A stretch of 63,728 bases of DNA, filler included, from Lenisia limosa (lineage: Eukaryota; Protista; Breviatea), in assembly GCA_001655205.1 (NCBI GenBank). It is 8 parts of 8 records of this genome, joined end to end, with 100 filler letters (N's around TTAATTAATTAA, not from the genome) between each part and the next. Parts side by side here need not be neighbours in the genome. Positions count along the whole stretch, not along the records: positions 1 to 21,994 come from LPNZ01008394.1; 7 more parts are not named here. One strand, written 5' to 3'. Positions 12,646 through 15,211 of this stretch are shown in pieces. How positions within the stretch are numbered: the stretch's first letter is position 1; each line of letters opens with the position of its first letter. The position numbers and the translations under genes were made by a program. The notes under the pieces are model-generated. The model did no database searches. It was not told where the DNA came from and saw only the letters and a list, made by a program, of their open reading frames with translations.

Positions 12646-12969
12646 AGAACTTGAGCCAGCGCTCACCTTAGGGCGTAAATGTCGGTTCCCGAATAGTGAG
12701 TTCCCAACTTGGTCACGTTGATTAAAACTGCCTTCCTCCCTTCTGCACTCAGGACGCAGCTGTCGAACACGAACTCTCAGAGAACAGGTGGTTTCTTTTC
12801 TGAGTATGAAGAGTAGTTCCTCGGGGGCGCCGAGGAGGTGTAGTGGGGGAGAGGCTCGACCAGGCGTGTTGGTGGGAGAGGTGGTAACAGGTTAAGGAAT
12901 AGGTGGACCAGCACCCTTCGGGACCAGTTTGATTCTTAGTTTCCATAGTTGCACTGGTAACCATGGTAG

Positions 12970-13074
12970 ACAGCATTTTAAAAGGACAAGAAATGTATTT
13001 ATCGAAAAACATTCAGTAAACAGCACTTTTTGAAAGGACAAAAACTGTATTTATCGTAACAATATTCAGTAAAA
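12970..13074. repeat. Two tandem ~50-bp copies of the repeat also found at 15021-15060 (candidate target-site duplications)
   Basis: 12970 ACAGCATTTTAAAAGGACAAGAAATGTATTTATCGAAAAAC+ATTCAGTAA; 13020 ACAGCACTTTTTGAAAGGACAAAAACTGTATTTATCGTAACAAT+ATTCAGTAAAA. Confidence 0.85.
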
Positions 13075-15020
13075 CAAAGATAAAAAAGATACACAGGAGA
13101 GCAGCTGCGGAGTGGACGGGGACGGACTGGAGGGAGGGTGACCTCTTCCGGAGCGGGGCGGTGGGCGGTCTGGGCAGCGGGTAAACAGACTAGAGCGAGG
13201 CGGCGGGATGGTGATTACTTCTGTGGTGACGCGGCGGGTGATCTGGGCACTTGGAGTGCAAACCGTTTTATGGGTTTCACCTATCACATAATAATGTAAT
13301 AGGGATGACATTCAATTGTTGTAAATCGAATAGGTGGAGGTATGAGGGAAAGAAGGGGTAAAGTTAGTAGGGTGAGGGGTGAGGTTGGAAGACAAAGGTG
13401 AGGTTAGTGAGGTGGTGGGAGGTGAGTGAGGTACGTCAGGTACTCCCGGAACGACGGATGTGGGGCCATGGAAGGTCATGATCGGGTGGGTGGTGAGGTT
13501 GCCCGTGATGACCCCCCTNNNNNNNNNNNNNNNNNNNNNNNNNNNNNNNNNNNNNNNNNNNNNNNNNNNNNNNNNNNNNNNNNNNNNNNNNNNNNNNNNN
13601 NNNNNNNNNNNNNNNNNNNNNAGAATTGTAGGTGATGGGGATGGCGAAGGTGACAATGAAGGTGATAGGGAGTACGACAATGGTTGGACAGGTGTTGGCG
13701 AGGGCCCAGGGACCAAGGTGACGATGGAGTCCATGGCGACGGACGGGCTTTCAGGGACCGCAACTGGGAGGGCCAGCCCCCTCCTCCAAGAGGTCACAGC
13801 GGGTTTGCCAGACTCGGAGTGAGTGGTCGAGGAGGGCAATTGGCAGCTTGGCCAGTGCCTTGGAGTCGAGGAGGGATCTCATGTCCTCCTTGAGGCAACG
13901 GCAGATTCCTGCTGCCAGGCCTCCGGTGTGACTGAAAAGGGGGGCTTTATTCCTGGACGAGGGTCTGGTGGTGGCAGGCGAGAAAGGCCAACAGGTGTCG
14001 CGGCAAGCCGAAATGGCTCTCTTCTTGGTCTCCGGAGATGGGATTAGGAGCGCATCCATGACCATGGTCTTGATGGACGGGCCAATTTCCCACCTTAGGT
14101 TGACCATTGTTGAATGTTGGCAAACGGAGATCAGGTGGCGGAGGGATTCCTGGTGTGGAGGAGATGGAGCTGGGCACAGAGGGCAGTGTGGGGAGATGGG
14201 TGGATAGCGGCCCACCAACGTCTGGTGAGTAAGGAGCCACTGATGATCCGGAGGCGCATGTTCTCCCGTTTCCATGTTGGAGTTCTTCCCAGGCCCTTCT
14301 TCATGTCAGGGGGTAGGGTGTGGTTGGCATAGCACTTTTCGTTCTTGATAGGGTGGGAGATGTGGTCCCTCATTAGGCTCAAATGGAGCCGGTTGCTGTG
14401 AGCTTCCGCTGTCCTGGAAGCGTGACCAAGGCAGAAGGCACTGGTAGTCTGACCTGGGGTCCCTTCTGGTGAGACCTCCGGTGATGATGAGTACAGGATG
14501 AGGGGTCCTTGTGATTCGGTCAGGAGGAAGAGGATGTGTGGTTCCCATACTTCGACCCCTTGACCCGATGTCGCCTTCTTGGCAAGAAGGTCCGCACGGT
14601 TGTTGGTGATGGCTTCGGCACTCTTAGAGGCGGATTGGTGAGCCTTGACCCGCAGGATGGCGGGGAGGCTATCTAGGCTCCTACAAGCCTGGGAAATGAC
14701 CATGAGGATGGCGAAGGCGGCGTTCCTAGGGTGGGGTGACGTAGTCATGGCGTCATTGACGGCGTTCACCATTGCCCTGTTGTCACAGTGGATTGTAACT
14801 AGAGCTATCGGTGGGGCTATTAGGATGGCGTGGAGGACAGCTAGTCCTTCAGTTGCGTATATTGATGCTTCCATATTCGTGGCGTGGATCTTGAAATTTC
14901 AATTTTCAGCTTTGGGATGAATATTCCATATCCTGTTTTCCCGATGTAGTGAAGGAACCGTCCGTGAAAAAGTCAGCCGTTGCTGCTGTGGAGACAATCG
15001 GAATGAGAGGTAGAGGTGAA
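13064..15020 (-). mobile_element. 5'-truncated, decayed non-LTR retrotransposon (RNase H plus C-terminal CCHC region; L1/Tx1-group-like C-terminus; RT not present)
   Basis: Minus-strand RNase H and zinc-knuckle motifs (next feature), ~0.7 kb C-rich 3' region, flanked by the ~40-bp direct repeats at 13020-13063 and 15021-15060. Confidence 0.7.
13751..15000 (-). pseudogene. Frameshifted ORF2 remnant: ribonuclease HI domain and C-terminal CCHC domain of a non-LTR element
   Basis: Across frames: FFTDGS (~14970-14953), GKTGYGIF, SIYATEGLAV, IHCDN, RVKAH, NNRADLLAKKA (the D-E-D-H-D RNase HI set). Then RLRIISGSLLT / CPLCP..ESLRHLISVC and LRVWQTRC. At least three frameshifts. Confidence 0.8.
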
Positions 15021-15060
15021 ACAGCATTTTGAAAGGACAAAAAGTATTTATCGTAAAAAC
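15021..15060. repeat. Third copy of the ~40-bp repeat, at the 5' junction of the retroelement, 71-110 bp upstream of tRNA-Phe
   Basis: ACAGCATTTTGAAAGGACAAAAAGTATTTATCGTAAAAAC. Confidence 0.85.
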
Positions 15061-15130
15061 TAGCACGCGCCAAATGTCAAAATTTTGGTTCACTATGCTG
15101 AAGATATTTGGAACCTCTGAAAATGTACTA

Positions 15131-15203
15131 GCCGACTTAGCTCAATTGGGAGAGCGTACGACTGAAGATCGTAAGGTCCCCGGATCGATCCCGGGAGTCG
15201 GCA
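15131..15203 (+). tRNA. tRNA-Phe (GAA), intronless, 73 nt
   Basis: Cloverleaf: acceptor GCCGACT/AGTCGGC+A, D stem GCTC/GAGC, anticodon arm TACGA-CTGAAGA-TCGTA, T arm CCCGG-ATCGATC-CCGGG. Confidence 0.96.
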
Positions 15204-15204
15204 A

Positions 15205-15211
15205 TTTTTTT
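15205..15211 (+). terminator. RNA polymerase III terminator (T7)
   Basis: Run of 7 T starting 2 nt after the tRNA discriminator base. Confidence 0.8.

Follow-up and report, generated by a model that had tools for sequence, protein, structure and literature searches.

A 63,728-nt stretch of DNA from Lenisia limosa (GenBank assembly GCA_001655205.1; eight parts joined end to end, referred to below as the window) carries a retrotransposon remnant on its minus strand, upstream of a tRNA-Phe gene. Positions 12970-15065 very probably represent three successive insertions of a single family of non-LTR (non-long terminal repeat) retrotransposons of the LINE (long interspersed nuclear element) type, placed ~65-70 bp upstream of the tRNA-Phe gene and facing away from it. 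It is strongly supported by the copies found elsewhere in the genome that this family strictly prefers a zone 50-85 bp upstream of many different types of tRNA gene, whose orientation is opposite to its own.

DNA searches of the window's own assembly (49 Mb) returned 39 matches to its coding part and 66 matches to its 3' part. In the window, a unit of 34-50 nt is present in three copies (12970-13019, 13020-13072 and 15021-15062), and the majority of the 3' matches end at window positions 13027-13030, inside the second of them. Forty-four termini on more than 30 contigs, comprising every occurrence of the unit core within the loci taken from the genome matches, have the last ~80 nt in common, end in ...GTCCTTTCAAAA and are followed by unrelated flanks. 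Matches to a 22-nt pattern of the terminus, with at most two mismatches, number 118 in the genome, compared to 0 for a reversed control, and the family comprises at least 118 copies. Since the same terminus is found beside unrelated flanks across the genome, the 40-bp unit is not a target-site duplication (TSD); as judged from these alignments, it is the element's own 3' terminus (...GTCCTTTCAAAA). The copies have a common 3' end and a variable 5' truncation, and show no terminal repeats beyond the separate copies of the 3' terminus. The divergence among 16 copies, compared over the last 300 nt, is ~10%, with 95% identity in the closest pair.

With the 3' end fixed in this manner, the locus upstream of tRNA-Phe can be read as an ordered series of insertions and short duplications (Table 1). 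From the tRNA gene outward, and in the sense of the element, the order is ~64 bp of native flank, TGCTA(G), copy A, TGCTGT, copy B, GTGCTGT, copy C, TGCTGT and the outer flank. All three insertions have the same orientation, and copy B stands head-to-head with tRNA-Phe. The mini-insertion copy A, located 71-104 bp upstream of the tRNA gene, is the third repeat recognized in the first-pass annotation of this DNA. The large copy B begins within the proline-rich linker that precedes RNase H, and its homology with contig C11617 starts at ~15019. The sequence ATTCAGTAA (element sense TTACTGAAT) precedes the last ~35 nt of the element, and TTACTGAAT is missing from the third unit because copy A was truncated a few bases further in. 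The hexamer TGCTGT is present after each of the three 3' ends in the window and was not seen after the ends found elsewhere; its presence after three independent 3' ends cannot be due to chance and identifies it as the real TSD. The fourfold repetition of this sequence would be explained if all three events had used the same staggered nicks.

Table 1. Features of the retrotransposon insertions and of the adjacent tRNA gene (positions count along the whole window)
Feature	Position	Strand	Remarks	Basis
Distal TSD copy	12970-12975	-	Sense TGCTGT; original outer flank beyond	Direct reading
Copy C	12976-13019	-	44-nt mini-insertion, family 3' terminus	Terminus alignment
TSD copy between copies B and C	13020-13026	-	Sense GTGCTGT	Direct reading and terminus alignment
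Copy B	13027-15019	-	5'-truncated remnant of ~2 kb, from the RNase H linker to the family 3' end	Genome DNA matches
N gap in the 3' untranslated region of copy B	13519-13621		103 N; ~61 bp truly missing	Alignment of five other copies
Stop codon of the CCHC-bearing frame	13751-13753	-	Followed by the 3' untranslated region	Frame reading
CCHC motif	14120-14185	-	C-x2-C-x12-H-x4-C, zf-RVT type, downstream of RNase H	Motif reading
RNase H domain	14560-14979	-	Split across frames near the N-terminus	Motifs, family profile, hhalign
TSD copy between copies A and B	15021-15026	-	Sense TGCTGT	Direct reading and terminus alignment
Copy A	15027-15060	-	Mini-insertion of ~34 nt, family 3' terminus only	Alignment to canonical 3' ends on C7066, C4856 and C10590
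tRNA-proximal short TSD copy	15061-15065	-	Sense TGCTA, then G/T overlapping the start of copy A; resembles TGCTGT	Direct reading
tRNA-Phe(GAA) gene	15131-15203	+	Sole tRNA gene found in the piece	ARAGORN

Insertions of comparable structure were found upstream of other tRNA genes. In the window and at four other loci, the TSDs of the family are 6-11 bp long and variable in sequence. Upstream of tRNA-Asn on contig C5829, a 670-bp copy is located between 11-bp TSDs (AGTCCTTCCTC). An older, shorter copy begins with these same 11 nt, and the insertion of the 670-bp copy must therefore have taken place within it, at a distance of 57-68 bp from the tRNA gene. Further out at this locus, a 23-nt mini-copy is flanked by an 8-bp TSD, CCGCACCA. 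The same nesting, with a 7-bp duplication (TTTGTCT), was observed upstream of tRNA-Leu on C10590. The tRNA-His locus on C312 repeats the arrangement of the window, with a degenerate 10-bp duplication between a 34-nt mini-copy and a larger copy upstream of the gene. Mini-copies of 23-82 nt were detected upstream of tRNA-His, -Asp, -Leu and -Asn genes. On contig C11617 (379-1010), a copy is located ~47 bp or more upstream of a tRNA-Phe gene that is interrupted by a gap of 10 N. This copy has an inverted 5' part, and the inverted and direct parts join at one and the same position of the element, as is characteristic of twin priming. There is a lesson for annotation in these loci: stacks of LINE tails of 20-90 nt upstream of tRNA genes resemble target repeats and can be mistaken for them.

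The two outer units of the window might have had a different origin, namely a local tandem duplication (by slippage or unequal exchange) of a 3' end together with its TSD, in which case the pair at 12970-13072 would have required no retrotransposition of copy C. The two units are indeed adjacent and in register, with 88% identity, and a few other copies of the family likewise have two terminal units. We nevertheless consider this origin unlikely, given that it does not explain the third unit beyond the large copy, and that mini-copies of 23, 34 and 82 nt with their own, different TSDs are found elsewhere, as abortive target-primed reverse transcription (TPRT) predicts.

Still less probable, and to be given little credence, is the view that the units of 40-50 bp are long TSDs, which was the explanation put forward in the first-pass annotation. 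A hybrid form of it would involve only two events, with a mini-copy and its short TSDs (~57 bp altogether) being duplicated by the insertion of copy B. The order TGCTA(G), unit, TGCTGT, large copy, GTGCTGT, unit, TGCTGT does formally fit the duplication of a TSD-unit-TSD block. However, the unit is the family 3' end at dozens of unrelated loci, and hence not target DNA. The hybrid form requires a duplication of 57 bp, compared to the 6-11 bp measured for TSDs of this family, as well as a later deletion of 9-10 nt, since the supposed duplicates differ by this length and at ~5 further positions. Moreover, stacked mini-copies with short TSDs between them recur at other tRNA genes. The travelling of the unit with the element to unrelated loci is the very observation that the first-pass annotation had named as contradicting its long TSDs. 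Its remaining statements on the locus fared better: the three repeat units and the tRNA-Phe gene downstream of them were found where it had placed them (by direct reading and ARAGORN), and the extra 50-bp unit, which it had explained as a separate and nearly fully truncated insertion, is best described in this way, with the tRNA-proximal unit constituting a third insertion. It had also described ATTCAGTAA as following each copy and forming the terminus of the element. This had to be corrected: one of the three units is not followed by ATTCAGTAA, and the true end, ...GTCCTTTCAAAA, is on the other side of the unit.

The relationship between the element and tRNA genes was examined across the assembly. 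ARAGORN placed tRNA genes next to about half of the element loci, and these genes represent at least 13 isoacceptor types (Asp, Pro, Gly, Ser, Glu, Leu, Gln, Asn, His, Arg, Ala, Val and Phe). After merging of overlapping loci and grouping of element matches, 53 clusters were obtained, and a tRNA gene was counted when located within 400 bp. Such a gene was found on the 5' side of 22 of the 53 clusters, in each of these 22 cases on the opposite strand, and on the 3' side of only one (P = 5.5e-26 against a generous random expectation of 1.6% per side; P = 4.8e-7 for the orientation alone). Measured from the tRNA gene, the nearest element boundary is never closer than 48 bp, with a median distance of 76 bp and an interquartile range of 66-84 bp. 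A sample chosen regardless of the element was also used, in which the 61 best-scoring tRNA genes were compared with the positions of the 22-nt terminus and with the BLAST loci; 13 of the 61 have an upstream head-to-head copy. The duplicated sequences have no common motif. The lack of a motif shared by TSDs or flanks, together with the many types of tRNA gene involved, indicates that the site is chosen by position and not by sequence. The suggestion made at first pass that this is a tRNA-flank-specific family whose 5' end faces the tRNA gene is thus borne out by the 22 of 22 orientations and the median distance, and the comparison of the copies with respect to tRNA distance and orientation, which was proposed there as a check, revealed a non-random distribution. 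Random insertion followed by retention only near tRNA genes, as gene-free safe havens or repeat-rich islands, is highly improbable: the age of the copies (~10% diverged) would have allowed time for selection and other repeat families share the same tRNA flanks, but retention does not account for the uniform orientation, the excess of 22 upstream clusters over one downstream, the interquartile range of 66-84 bp, or the recurrent insertion into older copies, within a span of a few base pairs and with new TSDs.

These features can be accommodated in a model of TPRT, in which the bottom strand (opposite to the tRNA sense strand) would be nicked and the CAAAA 3' end of the element RNA would be copied from the nick. 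Most complementary DNAs would abort early, giving rise to the mini-copies of 23-90 nt. The most likely route of site choice would be the tethering of the element ribonucleoprotein to the RNA polymerase III (Pol III) pre-initiation complex (TFIIIB/TFIIIC), by likeness to Dictyostelium TRE5-A. In TRE5-A, the protein encoded by the first open reading frame (ORF1) binds TFIIIB, and insertion occurs 44-54 bp upstream of the tRNA gene in the opposite orientation (PMC5911963). A tether of this kind would fix the distance from the tRNA gene, so that a new copy would land in or beside earlier copies and displace them outward.

In copy B, three minus-strand frames between 15073 and 13751 jointly contain the RNase H motifs and the CCHC motif. 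The RNase H series consists of FTDGS, ATEGL, HCDN, KAHQ and NNRADLLAK, and the catalytic residues D-E-D-(H)-D of RNase H type 1 (PF00075) are present in order: the D of FTDGS at 14960-14962, the E at 14848-14850, the D of HCDN at 14782-14784, the H of KAHQ at 14638-14640 and the D of NRAD at 14590-14592. The match of the CCHC region to Pfam zf-RVT is weak (E 0.095-0.1). The reading frame is disrupted by at least three frameshifts, two near 14880-14960 and one near 14200. In the C11617 copy, the same RNase H region, including the FTDGS N-terminus, is in one frame.

No significant match was obtained when the RNase H and CCHC segments were compared directly with Pfam and PDB sequences. A family profile was therefore built from four copies of the RNase H domain and used to query 1.84 billion representative proteins. 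Two of the proteins retrieved belong to the family itself; all other matches of the profile scored 35-45 bits, and among the 1.84 billion proteins no relative above ~45 bits was found outside the genome's own copies. A word-based protein search retrieved only two further copies of the element family, and cluster look-ups led to metagenome proteins without names. In 8 of 10 scanned profile matches, PF00075 RNase_H was present over the aligned residues (the two exceptions being an own-family protein and one other), and two of these eight also contained RVT_1. Alignment of the profile with one PF00075 protein by hhalign gave a probability of 96% (E 1.5e-9) over the E-D-H-D region. On the strength of these profile comparisons, the remnant is predicted to encode RNase H, and this call stands. 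The full RNase HI motif set and the CCHC motif reported on the minus strand at first pass were accordingly confirmed by reading of the residues, with the family profile and hhalign backing the RNase H. The age attributed there to copy B is likewise in keeping with its frameshifted ORF and the ~10% divergence among copies. Of ORF2, copy B retains no more than the C-terminal part, with RNase H and CCHC, and it is inactive.

The 3' untranslated region (UTR) of copy B is ~0.7 kb long and is interrupted by the N gap. Five other copies are collinear over the gap region; the flanks are 61 bp apart in these copies, except for one with 53 bp, and the two sides of the gap consequently belong to a single element copy. 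The gap lies ~130 bp past the stop codon of the CCHC frame, and another copy has no single open frame spanning both sides. Since the gap region is treated as 3' UTR, located downstream of the stop codon, the continuity of the frame across it is irrelevant.

A sister subfamily is represented by copies on C2790 (1708-2986) and C9329 (1238-2939), which are located upstream of tRNA genes (Arg and Val). Its RNase H is ~43-50% identical to that of the family described here, and the 3' part of the element shows 82-93% DNA identity; to judge by these values, the 3' module would be either conserved or exchanged between the subfamilies. An antisense match on C9329 is probably a second case of twin priming. 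On C2913 (1208-1723), two copies of the family flank an RNase H that belongs to a different element (KAHQ...GNNIAD; PF00075 E 0.009).

Several observations weigh against the interpretation of the locus and the family given above. Neither a reverse transcriptase (RT) nor an endonuclease could be linked to any assembled copy by an RVT_1 scan of the genome, motif scans of all loci or peptide tblastn, so that the family is classed as a LINE on the basis of its C-terminal domains and its anatomy of insertion. The hits of the RVT_1 scan were limited to one RT of the group II intron type, one gypsy-type element and two to three unrelated LINE RT fragments. No assembled copy extends 5' beyond the RNase H linker, and in a DNA search the 95 bp by which the C11617 copy exceeds copy B at its 5' end proved to be unique in the assembly. 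The family has either died out or has long copies that are missing from the assembly. In the window, the tRNA-proximal TSD copy reads TGCTAG instead of TGCTGT. With regard to the association with tRNA genes, the expectation of 1.6% is a rough upper bound derived from 1917 raw first-look tRNA candidates. About half of the clusters have no tRNA gene within 400 bp and some of these may be untargeted, although many of them adjoin N runs or contig ends, or have other repeats intervening before the tRNA gene. At C7964:21606-21627 the 3' end of the element faces the tRNA gene (211 bp upstream of it, on the strand of the tRNA), which is the sole exception in orientation in the sample of 61 tRNA genes. 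Finally, the proposed tethering to TFIIIB is drawn by analogy.

In the surveys of 2016 and 2018, Pol III-adjacent integration was described for LTR elements in yeasts and amoebae, and among non-LTR elements for dictyostelids only (TRE5, TRE3, NLTR-A and NLTR-B), and no TRE-like elements were reported in Physarum, Acanthamoeba and Protostelium (PMC5006619, PMC5911963). A literature search yielded no further reports of tRNA-targeting non-LTR elements in the later literature. The combination of RNase H with targeting upstream of tRNA genes has already been described in NLTR-A and NLTR-B (PMC5006619).

The behaviour of the family most closely matches that of TRE5 and NLTR-B. TRE5 inserts upstream of all kinds of tRNA genes in the opposite orientation, at 44-54 bp (31-98 bp in other dictyostelids), and is also similar in its frequent 5' truncation and in the presence of multiple insertions at one tRNA gene (PMC5911963, PMC5006619). 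The orientation rule is the same in both, whereas the insertion zone of the family described here lies ~15-25 bp further out. In TRE5, ORF2 encodes APE, RT and a zinc finger without RNase H, and the element ends in oligo(A). The family from the window has RNase H followed by CCHC and a ...CAAAA terminus, with longer A runs occurring only occasionally. The presence of RNase H and the lack of an oligo(A) tail imply that it is not a member of TRE5 proper. NLTR-B of Polysphondylium pallidum resembles the family in having RNase H and inserting 39-64 bp upstream of tRNA genes (PMC5006619). Comparison of the two RNase H sequences by eye, unscored, shows that short motifs such as ..ILHA...APP.. and V(K/A)AH are shared (PMC5006619 supplement). 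NLTR-A of Dictyostelium purpureum also has RNase H, but inserts 2-6 bp upstream of tRNA genes. In both NLTR-A and NLTR-B, RNase H is described as replacing the zinc finger (PMC5911963), in contrast to the family described here, in which CCHC comes after RNase H.

More distant parallels are provided by Ty1 and Ty3 of yeast and DGLT-A of dictyostelids, which reach the upstream flank of Pol III genes via the Pol III machinery and represent convergent safe-haven strategies. Unlike the present family, they are integrase-based LTR elements that do not use TPRT, and insertions of Ty3 and DGLT-A are found in both orientations. Non-LTR elements with restricted targets, such as R1, R2, the Tx1 clade, NeSL and CRE/SLACS, also form stacked or tandem arrays at one site. 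These elements recognize a DNA sequence inside a repeated gene, whereas the targeting observed here is positional and involves many tRNA types.

The host differs from dictyostelids in gene structure. Its HSP90 (C3968:7291-9116) and GSK3 (C11551 5746-7006) genes contain many introns of ~40-60 nt, between exons of ~85-400 nt (exons read singly), and in this respect they are unlike dictyostelid genes, which have few introns. The assembly, at 49 Mb, compares with 23-34 Mb for dictyostelid genomes (PMC5006619 supplement). A search for nuclear-receptor domains gave no hit, and two weak Zn2Cys6 domains were detected. The Atlas call for a GSK3 exon leaned loosely towards opisthokonts, and the nearest match of this exon in a word search had ~50% identity. 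Tentatively, and as a proposal that we hold to be possible rather than probable, the family may be the first tRNA-targeting non-LTR lineage outside the social amoebae, that is, a LINE with RNase H and CCHC in which TRE5-like integration evolved independently, in an intron-rich eukaryote with a 49-Mb assembly. A further LINE family obeying the same rule of orientation and distance, in a genome that does not look dictyostelid, would be a data point on how often the safe-haven strategy evolves, and would offer a second system for asking how a TPRT machine tethers to the Pol III complex.

The region outside copy C contains a second, unrelated repeat (window 12777-12953), immediately beyond the insertions. 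On C8761, the same repeat directly adjoins the outer side of a mini-copy located upstream of tRNA-Leu(CAA), and it is further present on C8925 and C3367; it may be a remnant of another element seeking the flanks of tRNA genes. The G+C content of the window is ~40%. Two observations concern other parts of the assembly. Contig C6086 (1148 bp) has a 359-aa open frame encoding an RT of the group II intron type; this sequence stems from an organelle or a contaminant and is unrelated to the element family. On C6212 (1501-2599), a match to small-subunit ribosomal RNA covers the whole eukaryotic model in 1099 nt, and appears to be an internally deleted or very reduced copy.

As regards the tRNA-Phe gene itself, no empty allele of the locus was found in the assembly; three more tRNA-Phe genes elsewhere carry no element and share only ~25 bp of the upstream flank. 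The T-loop of the gene in the window is ATCGATC, with A at the position where elongator tRNAs normally carry T54. Both the full gene on C11202 and the C11617 fragment have the same tRNA-Phe sequence as the window, and contigs C1938 and C7402 match the gene and its short flanks at 96-97%.

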